The translations under genes were made by a program, and so were the position numbers. A model generated the notes under the pieces. The model was not told the DNA's origin. It did not search any database and was given only the letters and a program-made list of their open reading frames with translations. A DNA stretch of 64,000 nucleotides from Botryllus schlosseri (lineage: Eukaryota). Shown piece after piece: positions 6,579-6,986 of this stretch (position 1 is its first letter; each line of letters starts with the position of its first letter). The DNA is taken from contig CM119374.1 of NCBI GenBank assembly GCA_051294905.1, positions 14,446,001 through 14,510,000 of the forward strand, in the 5' to 3' direction.

Positions 6579-6986
6579 ATGTCGAAGAGGGGAAGTAACA
6601 TATCTCGAAAACGATTGAGCGACTATCACGTTAAATTAAAACTTTTGAAAAACGCTAAAGGGAAACAGCGAAAAGAACTTTTATCGAACAATCAATTTTT
6701 AAGTTGCGTTTGCCAGTGCGTTCATAACTTGGCTTCGGGGACAGTACGTATCTCCCCGTCTAGAAAGTTGAGGCTTGGAAAACACAAATCCGATATCAGA
6801 CAATTGCTGGCGCAAAAAACTCGCAGAGGTCAACGGAGGGTGCTACAAAAGGGTGGATTCCTCTCAGGTATAAAAATTATGATAAAATAGCAACTTTTTC
6901 CTAACCAGTCTGTTTTAGCTATATTAGGCGCTGCAATCCCCGTCATCGGGAGTCTGTTGGGTAAACTTTTCGGGAAGAATGCGTGA
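6579..6986 (+). CDS. Small basic virion-type protein with protease-released amphipathic C-terminal peptide; two exons (6579-6867, 6919-6986), 118 aa spliced
   Basis: The unspliced ORF stops at 6890. Removing 6868-6918 (GT...CTAAC...TTTTAG) gives ...QKGG|FLSAILGAAIPVIGSLLGKLFGKNA*. Confidence 0.75.
6868..6918 (+). other. 51-nt spliceosomal intron in viral gene
   Basis: CAG|GTATAA donor, CTAAC branch point 6901-6905, TGTTTTAG acceptor, in-frame TAG at 6888-6890. Confidence 0.75.

Follow-up and report, generated by a model that had tools for sequence, protein, structure and literature searches.

The 64,000-nucleotide (nt) stretch of Botryllus schlosseri DNA analysed here, referred to below as the window, contains a Polinton/adintovirus-like element. 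One gene of this element (6579-6986), which belongs to the GasderminX family of the adintoviruses, is interrupted by 51 nt at positions 6868-6918. We conclude that these 51 nt are probably, at odds of nearly four in five (0.78), a real spliceosomal intron of the U2 type, very short and in phase 1, that was gained once in one sub-lineage of animal Polintons and was then kept under selection. The first-pass annotation of this DNA, made from its letters alone, had also read the 51 nt as a spliceosomal intron, and this reading held up: the insert is shared with a diverged relative (L003), its signals have been kept, its interior has not, and the exon that follows is constrained. Unless stated otherwise, all features lie on the forward strand.

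From its ATG at 6579, the open reading frame (ORF) passes through the residues V-L-Q-K-G-G-F-L-S, the last of which, S96, ends at 6866. Past S96 the frame continues as GGT ATA AAA... through seven further residues and closes at a TAG (6888-6890), the eighth codon; the first-pass annotation was right about the in-frame stop, but its distance of six codons was not. The candidate intron (6868-6918) is of the GT-AG type, lies in phase 1 and holds this one in-frame stop. Its donor reads CAG/GTATAA and its acceptor TGTTTTAG/C. A branch-point-like CTAAC motif is located at 6901-6905, its branch A lying 14 nt from the 3' splice site, and is followed by TCTGTTTT, so that a branch-point motif and a pyrimidine-rich stretch of the U2 type are both present. 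The two ends follow the GT/AG pattern of U2-type introns, as GTATAA...TTTTAG in the window and as GTAAAT...TTTTAG in L003. The GTAT donor, the CTAAC motif and the acceptor were all seen where they had been claimed.

Joining 6867 to 6919 adds 22 codons to the frame, giving 118 codons and a TGA at 6984-6986. Exon 1 (6579-6867) then comprises 96 codons and the first base of codon 97, and exon 2 (6919-6986) comprises the last two bases of that codon, 21 codons of a hydrophobic, Gly/Ala/Pro-rich pX-like tail, and the TGA. We adopted this joining only once a relative proved to carry the same insert. A pattern combining the signals, GGTA-N(20-45)-CTAAC-N(6-20)-TTTAG, occurs a single time when both strands of the whole 64 kb are counted, at the 6868-6918 site, against 0.10 occurrences expected from shuffles, and no further copies of the 51 nt were found elsewhere in the window.

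Relatives were located through the packaging ATPase of the element as an anchor (5926-6543, A32/FtsK-type, Pfam Pox_A32 with E=9.4e-9), after which the adjoining DNA was compared. L003, whose ATPase is 89% identical to that of the window, carries a 51-nt insert at the identical codon and phase; it starts with GTAAAT, ends with TTCTAAC...TATTTTAG, and contains two in-frame stops. An intron position common to other Polintons, which the first-pass annotation had put forward for checking, is thus found in L003 with the same codon, phase and length, and a disrupting insertion private to the window copy is excluded by the sharing of the insert with this diverged element. A third intron-bearing lineage may be represented by a contig of 5,470 nt (SRR25569773) that encodes an ATPase 66% identical to the window's (P0003). 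Its ORF P0042, of 99 amino acids (aa), ends two codons past G-G-F-L-S, which is how such a lineage would be expected to look.

Other relatives have the gene in one piece. In L002 (ATPase 61% identical), an uninterrupted 115-codon ORF directly follows the ATPase, and its end, ...V-L-T-G-G-F-L-G-A-L-L..., is colinear with exon 1 and exon 2 of the window. Uninterrupted ORFs are likewise found in L006 (114 aa) and on the contig of the ATPase P0005 (123 aa). The spliced frame is colinear with the intronless homologues L002 and L006, and also with the alignment of the whole family. In a neighbour-joining tree of the ATPases, the window, P0001 and P0002 form a clade at 100%, which P0003 joins at 72.5%, and the intronless P0004 and P0005 are the sister group of the intron-bearing copies. 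On this topology, a single gain of the intron in this clade would be the parsimonious reading.

Three further relatives, L001, L004 and L005, stop just short of the insert region. L004, from a Shandong aquaculture metagenome (ENA ERZ928222, PRJEB22134), has an ATPase 97% identical to that of the window, while the nearest named ATPase relative, from a sea cucumber, has 45% identity. The junction of intron and exon 2, used as an exact pattern, had no match in the JGI metagenomes or IMG/VR, and scans of these anchored on the ATPase gave no relative. P0055, a protein of 95 aa that ends at G-G-F, was considered as a second intron case and rejected: its locus (L007, 34-321) lacks an insertion and is interrupted by one in-frame stop, past which the tail can still be read, so that this is a decayed or mis-sequenced copy without an intron. 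An intron at 8257/8403 was also rejected, as the ORF in question begins at an internal ATG (8463), and does likewise in L002.

We then compared the window and L003 copies position by position. In exon 1, 214 of 289 positions are identical (74%), and in exon 2, 52 of 68 (76%). The intron as a whole agrees at 28/51 positions, distributed very unevenly: its positions 7-30 agree at 7/24 (29%, the random level), and positions 31-51, which run from the branch point to the AG, agree at 17/21 (81%). The length of the insert is unchanged between the two copies, which are separated by a dS of 0.7-1.4, near saturation. Conservation limited to the splice signals is the expectation for a spliceosomal intron; neither an insertion that breaks the gene, nor a bypass element, nor inserted coding sequence would be predicted to show it.

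The exons gave the complementary result. In the spliced frame, exon 2 has a dN of 0.168 and a dS of 0.78 (dN/dS 0.215), and the remaining two frames are closed by stops in both copies. Its 15 differences fall 7/1/7 on codon positions 1/2/3, a synonymous excess with a binomial P=0.023. Exon 1 has a dN of 0.165 and a dS of 1.44 (dN/dS about 0.12), and the dN of the ATPase is 0.066. Because exon 1, exon 2 and the ATPase all show coding constraint, the two copies appear to have diverged as functional elements. Furthermore, because coding constraint persisted in the sequence past the 51 nt, the 51 nt are taken to be removed from the message. The position and phase are shared, the interior is free and the exons are constrained in the pair compared, with the third lineage adding its shortened ORF only.

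These comparisons bear on three alternatives to splicing. The insert could represent a private or recent disruption that turned the gene into a pseudogene, as the in-frame stop of the unspliced frame would lead one to think. We consider this very improbable: the L003 insert has the same position and length, and a dS of ~0.7-1.4 excludes a recent single event. The window copy is moreover not decayed, because the remaining genes of the element all have open frames in the same arrangement as in L002. A gene that does look broken is provided by P0055 at L007, which is cut by a single in-frame stop without any insertion.

Alternatively, the 51 nt might be retained, with a functional product of ~100 aa and an exon 2 that is kept for another reason, such as a 5' leader or translational coupling. 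Automated ORF calling does yield reading frames of 99-103 aa, exon 2 runs directly into the next gene and shares bases with its start, and the insert is extremely short next to the neighbouring host introns. Retention would, however, leave the 7/1/7 pattern and the synonymous excess in a frame reached by splicing, with the other frames closed, to be accounted for. It also offers no explanation for a GT, a CTAAC and a TTTTAG kept beside a randomised interior, and it would dispense with a tail that ranks second in conservation within the family. We therefore regard retention as unlikely.

Finally, ribosomes might cross the 51 nt without splicing, by translational bypass, stop readthrough or reassignment. 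The length of the insert is a multiple of three, and bypassing of ~50 nt is known from gene 60 of phage T4. Matching take-off and landing codons are absent here, however, and TAG serves as a normal stop in other genes of the element, for example in the integrase. Read as protein, the 17 codons show no conservation, Rfam detected no structured RNA over 6000-7600, and the conserved parts are precisely the splice signals. We attach next to no weight to this explanation.

The intron reading itself has several points against it. At 51 nt, of which 36 separate the donor from branch A, the insert is about as short as animal introns get, and the donors of both the window and L003 are weak past position +4, with a base other than G at +5. 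The three host introns in the window are much longer, at ~320-1150 nt. They belong to a sulfotransferase-like host gene (~43416-46301) of at least four exons, whose introns measure ~650, 320 and 1150 nt, whose donors are GTAAGG, GTATGG and GTGACT, and whose acceptors are pyrimidine-rich with CAG or TAG. The first-pass annotation had stated that the host gene also uses a GTAT donor; this is true of one donor, GTATGG, and not of the other two. In addition, the insert was compared at the DNA level in only two copies (window and L003), the test for selection on exon 2 covers 21 codons, and the third lineage is known from its shortened ORF alone.

Identification of the gene came from its protein family. 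A word-index protein search with the 103-aa ORF gave no match, and it turned up no protein of the spliced form in that collection. Using phmmer on 1.84 billion representatives, we obtained 359 proteins with E<=1e-3, mostly of 105-125 aa, and the family alignments A2 and A3 comprise 66 and 97 members. The exon 1 product is a basic helical domain with a C-x-C-x-C...N...G motif. Across the family, the shared features are a C-x-C-E-C...N...G core, a basic helix and a Q-x-G-G-F motif that hardly varies, after which come ~23 residues with a high content of L, A, I, G and P. The Q and both G residues (plus the F in A2) are invariant or at least 90% conserved in the 66-97 members, and only one feature of the family is better conserved than the tail.

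The AlphaFold model of the L002 orthologue, P0085, to which exon 1 of the window is homologous (alignment A2), is all-helical, with a pLDDT of 81 and a pTM of 0.66. The sole significant fold neighbour of this model was the GasderminX protein of the Terrapene box turtle adintovirus (BFVD/UniProt A0A5H3CT60; probability 1.0, TM 0.60, 30% identity), and a fold search of the PDB gave generic helical bundles only. Through this predicted fold, we assign the window gene to the adintovirus GasderminX family. No gasdermin family was among the Pfam, PDB profile or PDB fold matches; the earlier claim used HHpred, which was not run here against Pfam or PDB. The Pfam family Adeno_PX matched over the GG and the tail in 13/66 members, with a best E=1.6e-4 and all matches under the gathering score; the score for P0085 was 13.1 bits against a cut-off of 25. 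These weak matches would agree with the description of GasderminX by Starrett et al. 2021, who reported a pX-like domain near its C-terminus (PMC8502044). A role of GasderminX in the virion core has also been put forward (bioRxiv 10.1101/341131).

The motif Q90-K-G-G-F94 is encoded at 6846-6860, with the predicted cut between G93 (ending at 6857) and F94 (starting at 6858). The first-pass annotation took this for an adenain-type site that would release a temporin- or melittin-like lytic peptide from a protein VI-like precursor, and none of these three attributions was supported as it had been put. Adenain cuts at (M/I/L)-x-G-G/x or (M/I/L)-x-G-x/G, and Q-K-G-G/F, with its Q at P4, falls outside this strict adenovirus consensus. 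Q occupies P4 in at least 90% of the family, and L002 has L-T-G-G/F. The G-G/x part by itself fits the specificity of other clan CE proteases. The tail of the window protein has an Eisenberg hydrophobicity (H) of 0.76 and a hydrophobic moment (muH) of 0.23, close to the family medians of 0.69 and 0.27, values that would place it with transmembrane or fusion-peptide segments and not with cationic amphipathic helices. A G-x-x-x-G spacing is present in the window tail and in 27/87 family tails, and is no defining feature. As for protein VI, no match to pVI was obtained in sequence, profile or fold searches, which led to the GasderminX family instead.

The enzyme expected to act at this site is presumed to be encoded by a small cysteine-protease-like ORF of 151 aa (11664-12119), which directly follows the major capsid protein (MCP) gene in synteny with L002. 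One PDB sequence match was obtained for it, to the cysteine protease S273R of African swine fever virus (ASFV) at a G-x-H-W motif (the catalytic His), with a non-significant E=0.54. It had no Pfam or NCBIfam match, and its single-sequence AF2 model was unusable (pLDDT 40). The assignment of this ORF as a protease is weak, and counts against the processing step, as does the Q at P4, where adenovirus adenain sites have M, L or I; the tail could also stay uncut and simply anchor the protein to a membrane by its C-terminus. Cleavage after G-G and a membrane activity of the tail are nevertheless reasonable inferences from the family signature and the analogy with pX.

Another ORF of the element is closer to the layout of protein VI. 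It encodes 123 aa (9969-10340), with Q-Q-S-G-G/D near the N-terminus, then a strongly amphipathic stretch and a very basic C-terminus. Its residues 34-61 reach a hydrophobic moment of 0.6-0.65, and the L002 orthologue (9201-9581) has Q-S-G-S-G. No match was found for it in Pfam, PHROG or PDB. By these sequence features, this ORF would be a better candidate than the GasderminX tail for an amphipathic factor released by a protease. It may correspond to the 'Cupiennin' class of adintovirus core proteins.

Putting these elements together, the host nuclear spliceosome would remove the 51 nt from the element transcript. The resulting protein of 118 residues would consist of a basic helical domain (~1-88), the Q-x-G-G/F site and a 25-residue hydrophobic pX-like tail. 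With less confidence, we propose that a cysteine protease of clan CE type, encoded by the element, cuts after the G-G, by analogy with adenain on pre-Mu and with ASFV pS273R at GG-X. Such a cut might free or expose the hydrophobic tail for membrane insertion or for anchoring of the protein. Constitutive splicing is the default expectation. Intron retention would yield a protein without the tail, and regulation of this step is not indicated.

A regulated version of the same scheme can be formulated, in which intron retention switches between a harmless form without the tail and a form with it, from which a lytic peptide is released, for instance to keep the integrated element non-toxic. The location of the intron, three codons past the G-G/F, separates the tail from the rest exactly, all three intron-bearing lineages stop within 2-7 codons on read-through, and weak donors are of a type often linked to inefficient splicing. 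An early stop is, on the other hand, expected by chance in 51 AT-rich nt, and the peptide added on retention is not conserved (7/24 nt). Sister lineages without the intron encode the tail constitutively, which means that gating is not needed for the family. The tail is also transmembrane-like, and not a cationic amphipathic lytic helix. In our view such a switch is doubtful, and constitutive removal of the intron remains the reading that we carry forward.

Splicing also affects what lies downstream. As the first-pass annotation had pointed out, removal of the intron brings the stop onto the next ATG: the TGA at 6984-6986 overlaps the ATG at 6979-6981 of the ORF 6979-7317. This stop/start overlap, ATGCGTGA, spans 6979-6986 in the window and is kept in L003 at 1740-1747. 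Since only the spliced message ends on ATGCGTGA, intron removal may matter for expression or translational coupling of the downstream ORF, although this is conjecture. Taken further, a minimal intron could have been domesticated as a regulatory device, with splicing efficiency setting the ratio of tail-less to tail-bearing protein, coupling downstream translation through ATGCGTGA, and acting as a gate, dependent on the state of the host, between silent residence and virion production. We think it improbable that the intron has acquired this role.

The element forms a colinear array of genes from 166 to 12119, in which all ORFs are open and their order and lengths are as in L002. The array includes an ORF of the size of a protein-primed PolB (2044-5922), the packaging ATPase, the GasderminX-family gene and the 112-aa ORF whose ATG overlaps its stop (6979-7317). 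These are followed by an rve+chromo integrase (7305-8303), three ORFs (8463-10340), the major capsid protein (10390-11667), which was recognised by a weak double-jelly-roll match, and the presumed protease gene. The 3' end of the integrase gene overlaps with an ORF of 69-72 aa (8257-8466) that has a hydrophobic, transmembrane-like middle; this small ORF is kept in L002 (7344-7562), and a 69-aa ORF is found at the same place on a contig from SRR25569776. No terminal inverted repeats were detected within 1-13400. To the right of the protease gene, a segment of ~250 nt is duplicated with 86% identity (12242-12889), and 13337-16449 holds five or more tandem repeats of ~713 nt, in each of which an ORF of 86 codons is started by TTG. 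The repeats of 12242-16449 may be a repeat-rich terminal region of the element, or satellite DNA.

Beyond the element, the window consists of ordinary animal genomic DNA. A Gypsy-like long terminal repeat (LTR) retroelement is located on the reverse strand (28268-31881), with a gag-like ORF bearing a zinc knuckle; its protease, reverse transcriptase (RT), RNase H and integrase are spread over four ORFs, so that pol is not one open frame. An intact ORF of 594 aa (54616-56400) resembles transposases of the hAT superfamily or the ZBED type, as judged by sequence alone. Long arrays of 15-16-nt repeats (58679-60493) create spurious ORFs on both strands, and a short TTAGGG-like repeat is present at 59748-59840.

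An intron inherited and selected in this way would indicate that the element is transcribed in the nucleus and depends on the host spliceosome. By this account, a virus-like element can gain an intron while it continues to evolve as a working unit. There is also a practical side: ORF-based pipelines would shorten at least this gene, and thereby lose its conserved pX-like tail. In addition, a large unnamed family of 359 representatives is now tied to adintovirus GasderminX, with Q-x-G-G/F and a hydrophobic tail as its signature. The first-pass annotation remarked that annotations of Polinton genes usually show no introns, in agreement with published work. Intact vertebrate Mavericks were reported to be without introns (PMC8097293), and 'they do not contain introns' was the stated reason for applying prokaryotic gene callers (PMC10120064). 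The adintovirus description does not mention introns.

The gene thus combines a known family, GasderminX, with a known mechanism, the host splicing of nuclear DNA-virus genes, and this combination is not described in the literature that we searched. Adintovirus GasderminX is the closest counterpart in several respects, being a protein of ~110 aa from a Polinton/adintovirus element, all-helical and with a pX-like C-terminal region; its family description is without an intron, whereas the window gene bears the pX-like tail on an exon of its own. Adenovirus pX/pre-Mu (PF05829, Adeno_PX) shares a basic region, a protease site (predicted in our case) and a conserved hydrophobic C-terminal segment. 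The viral protease cuts adenovirus pMu into three fragments, one of which is a conserved C-terminal piece (PMC7998265). The window protein differs in that it has one G-G site, where pX has two sites flanking a 19-residue basic peptide, and in that its N-terminal domain is modelled as a folded helical bundle, in place of the Arg-rich peptide of pX. With matches below the gathering score and a single G-G site, it would not be classed as a pX/pre-Mu protein. Adenovirus protein VI offers an analogy at the level of the general idea, that a maturation protease may free a membrane-active segment of an internal virion protein. In protein VI this segment is an amphipathic helix that becomes exposed once the N-terminus has been trimmed, while the tail encoded in the window is C-terminal and uniformly hydrophobic.

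With regard to the intron, the introner insertions of dinoflagellate Maverick-Polinton-like elements (PMC11957031 / PMC12166617) are likewise introns of spliceosomal type in Polinton-like proviruses. They are derived from transposons, form multi-copy families in protists and were mostly acquired after integration, whereas the intron described here is single in the window, resides in an animal host and has been inherited within the lineage of the element. The late transcripts of adenoviruses and adomaviruses also make use of the host spliceosome for viral mRNAs, and the late genes of adomaviruses are spliced. In those transcripts the splices join a leader to the body upstream of the ATGs, whereas in the Botryllus element a 51-nt intron lies within the coding sequence itself.

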